Assembly (NCBI GenBank): GCA_002104905.1
Contig: MCFE01000062.1
Location: forward strand, 62,001 to 126,000
Direction of reading: 5' to 3'
Source: Basidiobolus meristosporus CBS 931.73
Lineage: Eukaryota; Fungi; Basidiobolomycota
Length of the DNA stretch: 64,000 nucleotides
The first letter of the stretch is position 1. Every line of letters starts with the position of its first letter. Both the position numbers and the translations under genes were made by a program. The notes beneath the pieces are model-generated. The model was not told where the DNA came from and ran no database searches. It was given only the letters and a program-made list of their open reading frames with translations. Below, piece after piece: positions 5,067 through 13,327 of this stretch.

Positions 5067-6302
5067 CTAATATCTTTTCACGTGCATATTTCGTCTCAGC
5101 TCGACCTCCTCAGTAAAATGGTTGTGATGCCCATGAATCGTTTCACAGTCATCACACACCTCAATGCCCTTGAACCACTCATTCTCTAGGATTTCCTGAA
5201 CAGTAATGCGCTCACTAGGGTTTGGTTCCAGTATGCGCATGAGAAGCTCGCGACAACCAGGCGGCAGCTTGTTCAACGGTTCGTAGGTTCCAAGACGTCG
5301 GTGTTCAAGATAGTTTTTGTAGTTGGGGTCATTCTTGGTGGCAGTGCGGAAAGGAATCCCGTGGTATGTCATGGCGTAGTAAACGATCCCACAGGCCCAG
5401 ATATCGACCTCGCGGCCATCGTACTCTTTTTTGGTAAACGCCTCGGGAGCAATATATGGTTCAGAGCCGCAAATTCCCCTGGAGAGATGTGGTTGCTGCT
5501 CCCAACACATCCTGAAGACGTCCGAAACCCCAAAATCAGTGATCTTCAGATGCCCATGGTCATCTAGAAGAAGGTTCTCGGGCTTGATGTCACGGTGAGC
5601 GACACCCATGGAGTGCAAATACGCAACGCCATGGATCAATTGTTTAAAGCAACAGTTGATCTCGGTGGTTGACATTCTACCGTTCTTTATCACGTTATAC
5701 AGGTCACCGCCAGAGCAGAACTCCATGACCTCGCACCATCGATTGTTTTCATCCAACACGAGATCAACCGTTTCAACGACATTAACGTGGTGAAGTGAAG
5801 AGGAGATGCAGAACTCGGACGTTAATTTCTTCACGTATTCTCGCTCACCTTCGTCCTTTCTGCGACGACGGAAGGACTTCACGGCGTAGAGTTTTTCATC
5901 CTCCAGGGACCCAACATAATCGATTCTATGAGCTAGACGAACGACAGCCGTTGCCCCACGACCGATACAGCCCTTGTCGCACTTGTATTTTTTGTGGAGG
6001 AAATTATCCCCTTTGTATCCTGGTCGCTTGCAGTCCCCACTGTCGGAAGGCGGAGGCGAGTTGAAAATCCGCTGCAGCAGATTTTTCTTGGTCTGCTCAA
6101 CCTCGGGGTCGTCTGCGTACTGATTCTCGTTGTCTGGCTCGGGCAGTGGCAGAGAGAGCACGTTGTTGGGAGCCGTCTTGAAGAAAGCGGGCTTCTCGCT
6201 GCGAAATCCCGGCTTTCTTTCGCTCAAGAGCCCGGGCTCCGCTCTACGACGGACATTAGAATCCATAGCAGGGGCCCAGAAGTCGGGAGAAAATGTGACC
6301 AT
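5067..6302 (-). CDS. Ser/Thr protein kinase of the fungal HAL/NPR family (HRK1/SAT4/PTK2-like), 411 aa
   Basis: Intact ORF with IGRGATAVV, YAVKSF, KKLTSEFCISSSLHHVNVVETVDL (HAL-family signature), HRDIKPEN, TDFG, GSEPYIAPE and DIWACG. Confidence 0.93.
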   Translation of the reverse strand: MVTFSPDFWAPAMDSNVRRRAEPGLLSERKPGFRSEKPAFFKTAPNNVLSLPLPEPDNENQYADDPEVEQTKKNLLQRIFNSPPPSDSGDCKRPGYKGDNFLHKKYKCDKGCIGRGATAVVRLAHRIDYVGSLEDEKLYAVKSFRRRRKDEGEREYVKKLTSEFCISSSLHHVNVVETVDLVLDENNRWCEVMEFCSGGDLYNVIKNGRMSTTEINCCFKQLIHGVAYLHSMGVAHRDIKPENLLLDDHGHLKITDFGVSDVFRMCWEQQPHLSRGICGSEPYIAPEAFTKKEYDGREVDIWACGIVYYAMTYHGIPFRTATKNDPNYKNYLEHRRLGTYEPLNKLPPGCRELLMRILEPNPSERITVQEILENEWFKGIEVCDDCETIHGHHNHFTEEVELRRNMHVKRY

Positions 6303-8348
6303 GTCTTCTTACAATACAGATATATCAAACCAACCAGCACAAATACGAAGGCAAACGCAGAGCAAGCAGGGTGGTGATTAGCGAGGATAGCTGAATACCA
6401 GGATAGAAATCAGTCAGCCACTTGGAGGTTAAATACTTCAAGATGTCTGCAACAAGTTTGATCAATGACAGTAGGAACTTGGATGCAGGAATACCAATGG
6501 GTATTTATCCAAATGTTGGCACTAGAAAAATACCGAGATTGGGCGGCCGTTTATGGAGTGGAGAAGCAATAAAATTTACTAGGGCTCGATGATTGGGCAC
6601 TTCTCAGTCTAATACACCCTACGAAAATCGGATCTATAAGTAGTATATGATAGGTGTGATGGGTACGAAGGTAAGTCCAAGAGTTTCAGGTTTTCTGGAC
6701 ACCCCTGCGGTGAAAATTTTGGAATGGACTCAGCAACTGAGATCTATAGGGATAGTCCAAGAAAAGCGCAGACAACCTTGTCCACATGTAGGAATCCCAA
6801 CCCCAATCGGACCCATACCAGACACTGAAGATTCCCCAAATTATAGGTATTTAACATGGCTGCATTATGGAGGGAATTTGGGCAATATGGCTAAAATGCC
6901 AAATGCGGATTTTTCTTTTCTTCACTAATAAGCTTAATATGTGCGGGACCATGGAACTCTCCAATCAAGTAAATGATTTAATCAAAAAGGATAGAGTTGA
7001 GCAGGGGCAATCGAAATTCGGTCGGTCATCTCGCACAGCGGATTGATCGTGTTGATGGCCACACTATGGTCGCATTATACGGCAACTTGATTAATTGGGC
7101 AAAGTGGGAGCTCAGTAGGCTCATTCATTTGTACACCCATACCCCCACTCAAATAAGGAATCATATGTAGAGATGGGTATCCAAAATGAGCGACGGATGT
7201 CACCAATTACCGGCACCAACCCCTCCCGTGTTACATCAGATGTACGTGTCGAGGTGTTTGAGAACCTCTTGGTGTGTGGCTATTCATCACCCGCTGCACC
7301 GACACTCAGCCCATCGGCCATTGCAGCATGTTAGAAAGCGGAGGCAGAGTTACATCATGGACATATGGAACCCTGCGTTTGAAAGAGCTGGGATGATTCG
7401 ATTCAGCAACCATAGCACTCAACCCCAATGAGCCAAATGAATCAAACAGGCCTGAGTCGTGTTATGCTCGTTATTGATGCGAGAGAGGCCCAACACTGAA
7501 AATGAAATCTACACGGTGGCCCTAATCGAGACTCTACGTCTAGAATCTTCATACGAATGTGGAACTTCCTGGCGCTGGTTTGATAGGTATTAGATCACAG
7601 CAAAGTATGGAATGCGCCGCACGATGATCATAAATTTGGCTATAGTAAAATGTACTCTAAATGTAACCTAAAGCTAGCCATATTTGTATCCAAGGATCTG
7701 CAAGCCATCCATTCGCTAATGAGTCTGACGAAGGTACCATCCAGTGGTTCCCGCTTCAACTCAATTTATTCTCATTATATTGGGCGTGGCTGGGTGTAGC
7801 ATTATGCAAATAAAACGGTTGCAGATTATCAACATTGCAATTTCAACCATTGATATTAGAGGCCAGCTGCCGTCTACATTGAAACCATCCAGCTGGTAAA
7901 TCCATCCAATTTTGCAGTCAGCTGGGGCCTACGAGTCAGGCCATATGCGACGATTATGCCAGATGGAGATGGTGATATTGGGAACTACACTGCGCCAGAT
8001 CAACCCGTCACTGGCTTATCCTCCCAGATCACCTCGAATCGGCTCAGTAATTCTGGAGCAATTAGACGCTGTATAATCATTGACTTTCCCGGGCATTAAT
8101 CTTATGTCGGGTCACGTTTCCTTTTGTGACCTACTCCCAAGTACATCACCACATACAAAGTACAACTCGATGGGTGGAGTCGAAACCTATAACCGCCAGT
8201 TCTCAGTCCGGACCGTATGTCTATGGATTAATAGGCGGTAAGCAACAGGCTTCTCAGAGACATTGTGTGATCCGAGTGCCTAAGTGCAATACATGTCCAC
8301 CACCTCCAATATATTTTATTCAGCAACGAACGGCTTTACAATGTACAT

Positions 8349-8977
8349 TTAGCTGATTGGCTGCGAACCCGACTTATTACTTGTCTTGTTTATTGCCTCG
8401 TCCTCAGCGCTCCACTCCATCTCCGGCTCCATCCCAACATCAGGCTTCTGGTTGGTCAATGTTTGAAGAGCCTCCTCAAATTTCGGCTTTACGTTGGTCT
8501 TCGTCATGTAGACTAGTTCATCTGGATTCTTAACTAGAAAACGGTCGGAGTGACTGTCTTCGATATGTTTCATACTCGAACGGATCGCCTCGGCTAAGAT
8601 TCACGATTGAGGAGATTAGCATGATGGGGACTGTAGACGCCTGCCAGCCAACCAAGCTTACCCGTCACTCTATAGCCCACCGCGGCGTCACCTTGCTTTG
8701 AAACTTCATTCGGCTGACGTACAGAAACCCTAAACATGTGCTGTAAAATGCGACTAAGTTTGCTGCACCGTCCCAACTTTGATTTACTTGATGTTACCTT
8801 GGGGGATTTGGAATCCAGGAATCTGGACATTTCATCTACGGTGTAGGATTGGTGGGGCGAATCATCGCGCAATAAAGACGATGTCGAAAAACGGGCAGCA
8901 TAGACGCTAGCTGGCATCCGCAACAGAGAGGGCTTAAGTGTAAAGAGGCTTGTGGCAAGATATCTTTGATGCGGCAT
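8349..8977 (-). CDS. Two-exon gene for a ~186-aa putative mitochondrial protein of unknown function (exons 8977-8662 and 8593-8349)
   Basis: A 68-nt intron (8661-8594) has GTAAGC donor, GCTAAT branch point and TTAG acceptor. Phase-1 splicing joins the two track ORFs in frame (..GYRVT-AEAIRSSMKHIED..). The N-terminus is Arg/Ser/Leu-rich and free of acidic residues (..VYAARFSTSSLLR), like a presequence. Confidence 0.72.
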
Positions 8978-10778
8978 ATTGTGACTGGGTTAATGGGATT
9001 ATCAATCAGTGAAGTGCAATAGAGTCAGTGCTTTTATATCGTTGTAAAGGATATCTAGGCGTCTGATTAAAAGAGGTACTGCTTATTGAGTATAGGCTGG
9101 GGTTTATGTAAGGTTTTCTCAATGAAACTTCTAATCTATAGAAAGGGTGTTCTTGGTAAGCTTAACGTCACTCGCCAACGTCAGCCACGTCTGCATTATT
9201 CGTACAATCGGGCTATTCATGAGTTCATATATCGATCAAGAGTATTGACGTCAACAGCCATTTCATATATGTGAGTAATCACCGAATCCGATGCTTTGAA
9301 TCGGGACTCTGTTACCCTAGCATCGACCAAATTTCTGATGCTAACGATGCAAGACCCCCATTAAAGAGATCTTATTTTTCTGACCAGTGCGTCGGGGATG
9401 CTTCGAAATACTTGGCGATCTCAGTCCGTTGTAATTACATTGAAAGGCGACCACGTTCCAGCTGCCTCTTGTAAACTGTATATGGTATGCAGGTAAAAGG
9501 ATCATTACATCATATGCGGTTCCCTTAAATATCCAGTTCTTTGAGTCATCGATTTTGACCCTAACCCTACTACGTTTTGATAGACCGGAGAAATGTTGGA
9601 TCTTGCCATGGAGTGTCCATTGGATTTCCACTTGATGACCTCAATAATCTCAGTCTATCTTATGTAACGACCTTCTTTCATCATCATAACTGATTGCCAC
9701 CTAGTGGCTTACATGTGACATTTCAGCACCAAGGATAAGCAAGAGCCTATGTTATAACTGAGCTCTGCGTGTTAGAGATCATATTTTTAGGGTATTAGAT
9801 ATGTGATGAACTATTTGACATAATTGTAGAAATGGAAATATAGCTCAGGAACCTCAATAGAATGATGCCCAAAAGCTGGAGGTTAATAGAATATGATGCC
9901 ACTGATCCATCAATTGTACATATTGGAAGCAAGTCCTGATACCGGGAGACCCAGAGGAAATATTAGTTTACACCGTTTTCTGTACCTTGATGCTGTGCAC
10001 TCTAAATTGATATGGGATGCCACTGACACAGTAGAAAAAACCACCACAACACCCATAAATATTATTCTGAGCTTCTCTTAATTGCAACTGGATTCACTCA
10101 ACATAAAAGGTTGCTCATCTGTTCTTGATTATTCTGCACTAGTATAATTAACTTCGATTGGATAGGTGGCAGTCCATCGTTGATCATTCTGATAATCGAT
10201 TGATCGATATATCGATCAAGATATTTGCTCCCGAACGGTTTCGAATTGTAGCTTTCTGGTCTCGCTCTACAACGAAGCCTCTTGTATTGTATATTGCTCA
10301 TACGACCTCGATCGCTCAGGTCGGTTCTAGAAAAATACACCTTGGAATCCTAGATGAATTGCTGAATAATATGCCACCGTGAGGCTGTATATTTCATCTC
10401 ACCAATGCCAGGGAAGGGAAAGCTTCCATTTCGTAGAAAACGTAGGAAACGTAGGAAACAAATGAAATGGTGCGCTCGATTAGAAATCCAAGTGGTGCGA
10501 CTACCAACCCTCATCCTCTGAAAAACGAAGTCCATTTGATATTCTATTTAGAATCACGAAACTAATTCGTGGCTTATCATGAGTGTACATAAATCATAGA
10601 TCTTATTTTCATTGGGGTAGTATCTGTAGAATATATTTTGCGGGGCCACGATATTCCAATGTCGAGATGCCTAATTTGTCTTCGATTTTTCATCAATTTG
10701 AACCAATGGAAAGCAAGAGAATGATCTTTTAACCGTAGCTGGTAAACCAATTTAAGATGCGGGAAAGGTGGAGAAGTC

Positions 10779-10786
10779 TATATAAG
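10779..10786 (+). promoter_or_regulatory. Candidate TATA box of the globin gene
   Basis: TATATAAG ~50 nt upstream of ATG 10836. An AATAAA at 11995-12000 lies downstream of the stop. Confidence 0.4.
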
Positions 10787-10835
10787 CATTTGTCTAGGCT
10801 CGAGGTTTGCCATACAAATCATTCCTCAATTTAGT

Positions 10836-11933
10836 ATGTCTGCTGTCGAACAAACCCTTTACGAAACCCTTGGCGGGGAAGAGACCATCGGAAAAGTGGT
10901 TGATGTCTTCTACAACAAATATGTCCTCAACGATGATAGAATTAAAGATTTCTTTGTTGGTGTTGACATGGAAAAACAACGCCTCATGCAAACCAAATTC
11001 CTGGCCTTTGCTTTCGGAGGACCTGCCTTTAATGGAAAGAAGATGAACGTCGCCCATCGCCACCTCAAATTGAAGGACGAACACTTCGATGCAGTCATTG
11101 ATGATCTTGGTAAGGCTCTGCGTGATTTTGATGTGTCCGACGAGATTATTGCCAAGATCGTCGCCGTTGCGGAAACCACCCGTGACGATGTCCTGGGACG
11201 TACCGAGAAGAGTGCCCCAGTTGTTCCCGAGATGGAACATGTGGATCGTGAGCTCCTACACACTGATCCCATCTACCGTTTCCAGTACGTCGCCAAGTTT
11301 GTTGATTTCTCGGATAAGGACGTTGAGGCCATCAAGTCGGTTGCTGAACAACTTGCTCCTCTGGGCTCAGTCTTGGTTGACGCTGTTTATGACAAACTTC
11401 ACAAATTCGATGTTACTTGGGCATCAATGGCCAAGCGCCACGAGGGCTATTCCGGCCAAGTGGTTGAAAATGTCGATGATCTCGGCGTCGACAGCTCTCA
11501 GATCAAGTATCGCAAAGACATGCTTACTCGTTATATTGGTCGCCTTCTGACTAACCCATACGATGAGCGCATGATCAAATATCTTGATTGGGTAGCCAAG
11601 ATTCATACCGATATTCCCGGAAAGCAATCCAAGATCAACGTTGAATACATTCACATCTCCGCCCTTCTTGGCTTTGTCGAATCCACCTTGATTTGGGCCA
11701 TCAGCACCCTCAAACTCGAAAGAGAACACGAACTCCGCGTGATTCTTGCATTCAACAAGGTTTTGTGGTTGCAGAACGACTTCTTTGCCAAGTACTACGC
11801 TAAGGATGGCTCGGACGTTCCCAACTCGTTTGGCCTTCATGCCCACCCTCCCAAGTCCAAGTTCAGTCTCCAGAGCGCCATTATTGGTGGAGCTGTTGCT
11901 GCCATTGGTTTCCTAGTGGCTCGTCGCCTTTAA
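10836..11933 (+). CDS. Two-domain globin, 365 aa: group-1 truncated haemoglobin (aa ~1-122) + protoglobin/sensor globin (aa ~133-321) + C-terminal membrane anchor
   Basis: Domain 1: LYETLGG (Gly-Gly motif), FY26 (B10), FF40 (CD1), Q48/Q52 (E7/E11), AFGG, AH74 (F8), EHFDAV. Domain 2: YRFQYVAKFVDF, DAVY185, RKDMLTRY, KIH257T, YIHISALLGFVE, AFNKVLWLQNDFF. Tail: AIIGGAVAAIGFLVARRL. Confidence 0.92.
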   Translation: MSAVEQTLYETLGGEETIGKVVDVFYNKYVLNDDRIKDFFVGVDMEKQRLMQTKFLAFAFGGPAFNGKKMNVAHRHLKLKDEHFDAVIDDLGKALRDFDVSDEIIAKIVAVAETTRDDVLGRTEKSAPVVPEMEHVDRELLHTDPIYRFQYVAKFVDFSDKDVEAIKSVAEQLAPLGSVLVDAVYDKLHKFDVTWASMAKRHEGYSGQVVENVDDLGVDSSQIKYRKDMLTRYIGRLLTNPYDERMIKYLDWVAKIHTDIPGKQSKINVEYIHISALLGFVESTLIWAISTLKLEREHELRVILAFNKVLWLQNDFFAKYYAKDGSDVPNSFGLHAHPPKSKFSLQSAIIGGAVAAIGFLVARRL

Positions 11934-13123: not shown

Positions 13124-13327
13124 ATGTTTAACAACAGCATTAAAAAGCATATCTCCCTCAAATACTACCAGTATGAGCTAGTCACCTGCATTTATATGTT
13201 AGAGCCTTGGGAGAAGGTCATTTTTAATAGCTTCGTGCTCACAAGCTTATTGGTAACCTTGTACTTTGGAATCACATATCTTCCAATCCCCACCATGCCT
13301 ACCGCCTCCAGTTATGGGCTTTCGTGA
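13124..13327 (+). CDS. SPTSSA: Serine palmitoyltransferase small regulatory subunit (ssSPT type), 67 aa
   Basis: Family motif YYQYELVTCIYMLEPWEKVIFNS followed by one hydrophobic helix; start context AAAATG. Confidence 0.85.
   Translation: MFNNSIKKHISLKYYQYELVTCIYMLEPWEKVIFNSFVLTSLLVTLYFGITYLPIPTMPTASSYGLS

Follow-up and report, generated by a model that had tools for sequence, protein, structure and literature searches.

Can two globins of different families be joined in one natural protein? The question is raised by a gene on contig MCFE01000062.1 of Basidiobolus meristosporus CBS 931.73 (assembly GCA_002104905.1), located in a stretch of 64,000 nucleotides that is referred to here as the window. 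To our knowledge, globins form three families, the known proteins with several globins repeat a single family, and in the known chimeras a globin is combined with a non-globin domain. An earlier note on this DNA had claimed that one open reading frame (ORF) of the window codes for two complete globin domains: a group-1 truncated (2/2) haemoglobin, of the T family, followed by a protoglobin-type (3/3) sensor globin, of the S family.

The ORF listing of the window contains one uninterrupted, intronless frame of 365 aa (10836-11933, forward strand), within which both Pfam domains were found above their cut-offs; the alignments and the predicted folds point to the same T+S composition and show intact haem pockets in both domains. 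An identical 365-aa product is given by the public gene model for this contig. The start of the gene had been placed correctly; the end had been set at 11801, which falls at about residue 322, where the second globin domain ends. The 43 further residues, which end in LQSAIIGGAVAAIGFLVARRL, include a hydrophobic C-terminal helix that had been missed.

The N-terminal half was matched by the Pfam profile Bac_globin (PF01152) at residues 7-119 with 59.5 bits (cut-off 21). Its top relative of solved structure was the truncated haemoglobin (trHb) of Tetrahymena pyriformis (3aq5, E 4e-25), and the other best matches were also group-1 truncated haemoglobins. Alignment to 3aq5 assigned Y26 to position B10, Q48 to E7, M51 to E10, Q52 to E11 and H74, whose codon is found at 11055-11057 of the window, to F8. 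In an alignment of 33 group-1 (T1) globins Q48, G61 and H74 were invariant, and Y26, Q52, F40 and both Gly-Gly motifs (G13-G14 and G61-G62) were nearly so; all are present in this protein. With Met at E10, the hexacoordination through His or Lys known from cyanobacterial and algal globins is not expected. The N-terminal half of the AlphaFold2 model was aligned by Foldseek to the group-1 structures (trHbN) 3aq9 and 3aq5 with a template modelling (TM) score of 0.90 and a root-mean-square deviation of 1.4-1.5 Å over 115 columns. As judged from its profile, its predicted 2-on-2 fold and its pocket residues, this half of the protein is a group-1 trHbN.

The second half was matched by the Protoglobin profile (PF11563) at residues 148-325 with 127.4 bits (cut-off 25). 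Its residues were mapped with a profile built from 40 sensor globins, which was aligned to the protoglobin of Methanosarcina (MaPgb) and to the Geobacter globin-coupled sensor GsGCS. In this alignment B10 is Y185 (Y61 in MaPgb) and F8 is H257 (H120 in MaPgb, H93 in GsGCS; codon at 11604-11606 of the window), while E11 is L230 (F93 in MaPgb, H66 in GsGCS) and E7 is R226, which is nearly invariant. The presence of Leu at E11 rules out a bis-His coordination of the GsGCS type. In globin-coupled sensors the Tyr at B10 is the residue that contacts O2. Foldseek aligned the predicted second half to the sensor globin of AfGcHK (5ohf) with a TM score of 0.89 and to MaPgb (2veb) with a TM score of 0.75. 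The profile, the predicted 3-on-3 fold with a pre-A (Z) helix, His F8 and Tyr B10 place this half in the S family. Stand-alone single-domain sensor globins of fungi (Sgbs) begin exactly at the equivalent of Met133 (MEHIDR...). A profile scan and a structure prediction, two of the checks that the earlier note had proposed, gave both domains above the curated cut-offs and a model that matches the trHbN and the sensor/protoglobin folds; the pocket residues that it had named (H74, H257, Y26, Y185 and Met51) were all borne out by the alignments to solved relatives.

The structure was predicted for the monomer from a 26-row alignment (A1); the larger alignments A2 and A3 were discarded because in them stand-alone trHbs, at 13-22% identity, were wrongly placed on the S domain. 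The model had a mean predicted local distance difference test (pLDDT) score of 84.9 and a predicted TM score (pTM) of 0.59, with low confidence only at residues 1-4, 125-128 and 341-353. The second of these segments, with pLDDT below 50, lies in the linker of about 10 aa (RTEKSAPVVP, residues 122-131) that had already been recognised between the two domains. No FAD- or NAD(P)H-binding reductase domain was found in the 365-aa protein with Pfam or NCBIfam, the latter adding no match at all, in agreement with the earlier observation that a flavoreductase domain is lacking. Likewise no transmitter domain, such as a methyl-accepting chemotaxis protein (MCP), kinase, cyclase or STAS domain, was found by Pfam, which detects just the two globins; the S domain is followed by nothing but an unstructured stretch of 20 residues and a single hydrophobic helix. 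The protein is therefore neither a globin-coupled sensor, having no C-terminal transmitter, nor a flavohaemoglobin, having no reductase.

The helix at the C-terminus showed a mean Kyte-Doolittle hydropathy of 2.0 over 17 residues (within 344-361) and is followed by RRL-COOH. AlphaFold2 predicted it to extend from residue 345 to 364, the remainder of the protein being two soluble globin folds. A lone helix at the extreme C-terminus, with no signal peptide and no other transmembrane segment, makes this a tail-anchored membrane protein by the usual definition, its insertion being predicted. With this topology both haem domains would face the cytosol. The hydrophobic tail helix occurs in all fusion paralogues described below, and the same helix was found in nearly all Sgbs of Mucorales, in that of Umbelopsis isabellina and in most of those of chytrids, Blastocladiella and Paraphysoderma. 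When fungal sequences (P0034-P0076) were compared with bacterial and metagenome ones (P0082-P0120), the helix was absent from the Sgbs of the bacterial/planctomycete type, which are about 200 aa long; the Sgbs of Mortierellomycota end instead in a conserved GFFSRLWSLFF motif. Transmembrane segments are not mentioned in the 2012 census of fungal globins (Hoogewijs, PMC3287990). As a separate observation, three single-domain T1 globins from metagenomes (P0230, P0251 and P0279), which fall in or near the chytrid-type clade, carry basic residues after a hydrophobic C-terminal tail and look like tail-anchored trHbNs.

How widespread is this architecture? A search of 5.8 billion proteins found it only in Basidiobolus, where its public records are unnamed "hypothetical" or "Globin-sensor domain-containing" proteins. 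A HMMER scan of 1.84 billion representative proteins gave 3014 matches; the best 150 of these, together with the matches from the 5.8-billion-protein search and from a word-index search, made up 283 proteins that were scanned for each domain, and among these 283 best matches only Basidiobolus proteins contained both. Since a fusion with two recognisable domains should rank among the best matches, it should have been seen. A region-restricted search for longer relatives of the T domain returned only the fusion proteins.

Large proteins with several matching stretches (P0136 and P0138-P0140) were considered as further T+S candidates and rejected: they consist of T repeats throughout, and their "Protoglobin" totals were sums of sub-threshold matches to B helices, with no stretch passing the threshold. 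Repeats of a single family were thus found with 12 T units (P0136), with five T units (P0140, from Astrephomene) and with four S units (P0137).

No description of a T+S globin fusion was found in the literature searched. The novelty that had been supposed holds for that literature; it does not hold for the databases, in which the architecture was already present, unnamed and confined to Basidiobolus. The 2012 census lists flavohaemoglobins and single-domain S globins as the globins of fungi, as the earlier note had stated; it adds no more than two T1 globins (Allomyces, Batrachochytrium) and reports that nothing is known of the function of Sgbs (PMC3287990).

Further copies of the gene bear on whether the fusion is real. 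A second B. meristosporus copy, on MCFE01000087.1 (L001:6001-7104), has an open fusion frame of 367 codons, which the public annotation splits into a "partial" 122-aa bacterial-like globin (P0121) and a 234-aa protoglobin protein (P0006), the two models being 33 nt apart. As no stop codon separates them and the frame is open throughout, the split is an annotation artefact, and P0121 and P0006 were rejected as stand-alone globins, being the halves of one gene. The B. ranarum protein P0122 was rejected for the same role because it is cut by a contig end. B. ranarum has four fusion proteins of 366-371 aa, 77-87% identical, encoded by complete, intronless genes in four different neighbourhoods. 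The most divergent fusion paralogue is P0005 of this species (L008:1936-3051), which has Ile at E10 of the T domain and a tail with a different end (...LMQKLLVLL); this gene is perhaps a functional variant, or selection on it may be relaxed.

Among the six full-length fusion genes the synonymous substitution rate (dS) was above 1.5 or not computable, i.e. saturated. The nonsynonymous rate (dN) was 0.10 for the T domain and 0.07 for the S domain, compared with 0.48 for the linker and 0.40 for the tail. The low dN of both globins in spite of saturated dS indicates strong purifying selection, and an open linker frame kept in six genes with saturated synonymous sites is not due to chance and must have been maintained for long. 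The equivalent of Met133 is Ile in three of the six genes, in which no further Met occurs until after the B10 tyrosine; hence, these three genes can yield the S domain only within the fusion.

A third B. meristosporus copy, on MCFE01000539.1 (L002:2893-3705), is annotated as a 234-aa protein (P0007) that begins at an internal Met. The upstream sequence reads in frame MSAVERT...TTRDND...KMDHVDR: about 105 codons of the T domain are gone through an in-frame deletion, and TTRDND is what remains of the end of that domain. This copy retains the TATA block, the start codon and the first codons of the fusion genes, which shows its descent from a fused gene; its sister in the S tree is the S half of the second copy. 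P0007 was therefore rejected as a stand-alone protoglobin gene. To judge from this sequence, the S domain and tail can evidently persist without the T domain.

The two public models of the second copy could be taken to mean that the fusion is an artefact of annotation or assembly, or that the locus yields two separate proteins. This explanation is extremely improbable: besides the missing stop codon between these models, the frame has been kept in six independent genes of two species despite saturated dS, half of these genes lack the internal Met, the window gene has a public model of the full 365 aa, and the copy without a T domain still has the promoter, start and first codons of a fusion gene.

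The origin of the two domains was approached by phylogenetic trees. The T domains of Basidiobolus share two deletions (GGP-xxNG and HL----KL) and an MQTKFL motif in the E helix with the T1 globins of the chytrids Batrachochytrium (P0248), Homolaphlyctis (P0222) and Entophlyctis (P0135), as well as with a few unnamed sequences. In the maximum-likelihood T tree, which is unrooted, has a small sampling and includes several metagenome proteins in the clade, Basidiobolus and chytrid T1 globins were united (97/98) apart from the bacterial-type sequences. The S domains of Basidiobolus formed one clade (100/99) inside the fungal Sgbs, sister to Mortierellomycota (99/95), and the planctomycete and metagenome Sgbs were set apart (100/100). 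The branching order of the paralogues was roughly congruent between the T and S trees. Adjacency of the two genes as a precursor of the fusion was looked for in Batrachochytrium, where the T1 gene has no Sgb neighbour.

Most simply, these sequences suggest that two old fungal globins fused once, in the Basidiobolus lineage, and that the fused gene was then duplicated. A chytrid-type T1 globin would have been placed ahead of a tail-anchored sensor globin already present in early-diverging fungi, and the fusion would later have been duplicated into several dispersed intronless paralogues. Alternatively, the T domain could have been acquired recently from bacteria by horizontal transfer and then fused to a native globin. 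Basidiobolus has been reported to hold many bacterial genes, and outside the genus the best word-index matches of the T domain, next to a chytrid fragment, were 122-aa metagenome proteins and a trHbN of Spongiibacteraceae, at 53-56% identity. The grouping with chytrid T1 globins in the T tree, small and unrooted as it is, and the indels in common speak against such a transfer, as does the composition: the GC content at third codon positions was 0.51 and 0.57 for the two domains and 0.55-0.58 for neighbouring genes, i.e. native, with no sign of recent transfer. Recent acquisition from bacteria is not favoured by these data and appears quite improbable. For the architecture together with the single-fusion history our confidence is high.

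The features of the gene are collected in Table 1. Upstream from it, three sequence blocks, at 10670-10692 and 10762-10801 of the window, have been kept in eight paralogues despite the saturation of synonymous sites in the coding sequences: CCxTTT..CTTGATTTTTCA, GGAAAGGTGGAGAAGT with the TATA box, and GTCTAGGCT. From their conservation these blocks are candidate shared regulatory elements. The locus of the second copy is a paralogous segment of the window, a kinase gene and an E1 dehydrogenase gene flanking the globin gene in both. In that segment an ABC transporter gene lies between the kinase and the globin (L001:2919-4929); the corresponding 4.4 kb of the window (6300-10750) gave no ABC transporter match and contains only short ORFs. 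Downstream from the globin gene, a small ORF of 67 aa (13124-13327) is publicly annotated as resembling a serine palmitoyltransferase small subunit (PF11779).

Table 1. Features of the two-globin gene and its upstream region (positions in the window).
Feature	Position	Strand	Basis
Conserved block, candidate core promoter: GGAAAGGTGGAGAAGT, TATA box (tatataag, ~10781-10788), GTCTAGGCT	10762..10801	+	Upstream alignment of 8 Basidiobolus paralogues
Start codon (MSAVEQ...)	10836..10838	+	First ATG in the ORF; N-terminus MS[AVT][VI]E common to all paralogues
Complete intronless coding sequence, 365 aa and stop: T globin, linker, S globin, predicted tail anchor	10836..11933	+	
Group-1 truncated (2/2) haemoglobin domain, aa 7-119	10854..11192	+	Pfam PF01152, PDB 3aq5, Foldseek, invariant residues
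Flexible linker, aa 122-132 (RTEKSAPVVPE)	11199..11231	+	Low pLDDT, high dN; length differs by 1-2 residues among paralogues
Sensor (protoglobin-type, 3/3) globin domain, aa 133-325	11232..11810	+	Begins at ancestral start Met133 (MEHVDR); Pfam, profile alignment, Foldseek
Predicted tail anchor, aa 344-365: hydrophobic Gly-rich helix LQSAIIGGAVAAIGFLVA, then RRL	11865..11930	+	Hydropathy, predicted helix

The likeliest reading of the function is that of a membrane-tethered, probably dimeric, multi-haem protein that reacts with O2 and NO. The tail would be inserted post-translationally into the membrane of the endoplasmic reticulum (ER) or into the mitochondrial outer membrane, with the haem domains toward the cytosol. 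S-family globins are dimers, which makes a dimeric, four-haem assembly tethered to the membrane plausible if the S domain dimerises as others of its family do. The T domain, with the TyrB10/GlnE7/GlnE11 triad of the Tetrahymena type, would hold O2 tightly and dioxygenate NO to nitrate. The S domain, with TyrB10, LeuE11 and ArgE7, would bind a second gaseous ligand and may tune or re-reduce the T haem with the help of reductases in the membrane, for example the cytochrome b5 reductase system.

NO dioxygenation requires the re-reduction of ferric haem. Members of the FNR/cytochrome b5 reductase superfamily are anchored in the membrane at the ER and at the mitochondrial outer membrane, and the tail anchor could bring the globins to such reductases. 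Truncated haemoglobins acting as NO dioxygenases need electron donors of this superfamily (PMC3820574). In the account of Igarashi & Kobayashi (2011) as cited in PMC4720485, bound O2 is stabilised in the Tetrahymena trHb by the B10-E7-E11 hydrogen-bond network, which also supports NO detoxification. The S haem might relay electrons, gate the T haem or perform a chemistry of its own; MaPgb, for one, has nitrite reductase and peroxynitrite isomerase activity (PMC4020757). The role of the Basidiobolus protein would be the handling of O2 and NO in the hypoxic gut and dung niche of this fungus, rich in nitrogen oxides, a niche that fits such a role without proving it.

Several observations weigh against this reading. 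A look-up of the exact protein matched only genomic contigs and no transcript, and globin haem is not known to us as an NAD(P)H-linked reductase. The pTM of 0.59 and the low-confidence linker mean that the model has no confident fixed interface between the T and S domains; direct electron transfer from haem to haem is consequently not favoured. One gene copy has lost its T domain, yet its S domain and tail are intact, and in P0005 the T domain carries Leu, not Gln, at E11. The O2/NO-handling mechanism is accordingly put forward tentatively, with less than even confidence; blended with the architecture and its history, it makes the overall explanation that we consider the best and, on balance, probable.

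It is possible, although doubtful, that the two haems work as one device, in which the S haem would be the ligand- or redox-gated partner of the T haem, acting as a relay of electrons from membrane reductases or as an allosteric gate. If this were true, the protein would be an NO dioxygenase or O2/NO sensor that regulates itself and is free of a reductase, a globin machine of a type so far undescribed, and would give a first functional handle on the fungal sensor globins and on their tail anchors, previously unremarked.

Two other explanations were considered. The protein could buffer or deliver O2 at the membrane, its haems having different O2 affinities, without any NO chemistry; under hypoxia the recipients could be sterol and desaturase enzymes of the ER or mitochondrial respiration. 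We regard this as rather unlikely, as the TyrB10/GlnE7/GlnE11 network in the Tetrahymena trHb releases O2 very slowly and would be poor for delivery. The predicted tail anchor and the association of Basidiobolus with the gut agree with an O2 buffer, and so do predictions that most group-N trHbs remain oxygenated even under microaerobic conditions and that 43% of them serve in O2 transport (PMC4720485). The protein could also be a membrane-bound sensor of gas or redox state: its S domain would work like that of a globin-coupled sensor, a transmitter or modulator would be replaced by the T domain, and the signal would be relayed through protein-protein contacts at the membrane. The nearest structural matches of the S domain are indeed the sensor domains of AfGcHK and GsGCS, a membrane-bound globin-coupled sensor is known in Geobacter (PMC8076648), and fungal Sgbs are conserved without an enzymatic partner domain. 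However, Pfam shows two globins and no kinase, cyclase, MCP or STAS transmitter, and the extra domain is N-terminal, whereas in globin-coupled sensors it is C-terminal; a sensor of this kind seems unlikely.

A natural protein that unites two globin families, is under purifying selection and is predicted to be membrane-anchored represents a new architecture. As a "Rosetta stone", it suggests a functional link between truncated haemoglobins and fungal sensor globins, its reach being limited by its narrow range, a single genus. The predicted tail anchors on the sensor globins of Mucorales, chytrids and Blastocladiomycota, which the bacterial relatives do not have, may matter more widely.

Compared with known systems, the T domain is closest to the Tetrahymena pyriformis trHb (3AQ5), with 43% identity, the same TyrB10/GlnE7/GlnE11/HisF8 pocket, the same Gly-Gly motifs and a predicted 2/2 fold, and it falls in one clade with chytrid T1 globins such as that of Batrachochytrium dendrobatidis. 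Unlike the free group-1 trHbs of about 120 aa, it forms the N-terminal part of a longer protein with a predicted membrane tether, and it has Met at E10. The S domain is 55-62% identical to the Sgbs of Mortierellomycota and Mucorales, with the same TyrB10, HisF8 and start Met, and the fusion shares its predicted C-terminal tail anchor with the Sgbs of Mucorales, chytrids and Blastocladiella; it differs from single-domain fungal Sgbs in that a complete globin from a different family precedes the S domain. Its Leu at E11, with the nearly invariant Arg at E7, contrasts with Phe at E11 in MaPgb and His at E11 in GsGCS. The membrane-bound GsGCS of Geobacter sulfurreducens is likewise an S-family globin tethered by a hydrophobic C-terminal part, but there the transmembrane domain has several helices and the haem is hexacoordinate through His E11, whereas the Basidiobolus protein has a single tail helix and an additional T globin.

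Like flavohaemoglobins, the Basidiobolus protein fuses a globin to a second domain with a redox cofactor, and O2 and NO are the likely substrates; in contrast to them, it has no FAD/NAD(P)H reductase, its partner domain is another globin, and it is predicted to be anchored in the membrane. With the multi-unit and chimeric T globins, namely the tandem trHbs of ciliates and green algae, the trHb-monooxygenase and the trHb-nitrate reductase, it has in common a T1 globin within a multidomain protein and more than one haem domain per chain. The multi-unit globins found in the present searches repeat one family, whereas the Basidiobolus protein joins two.

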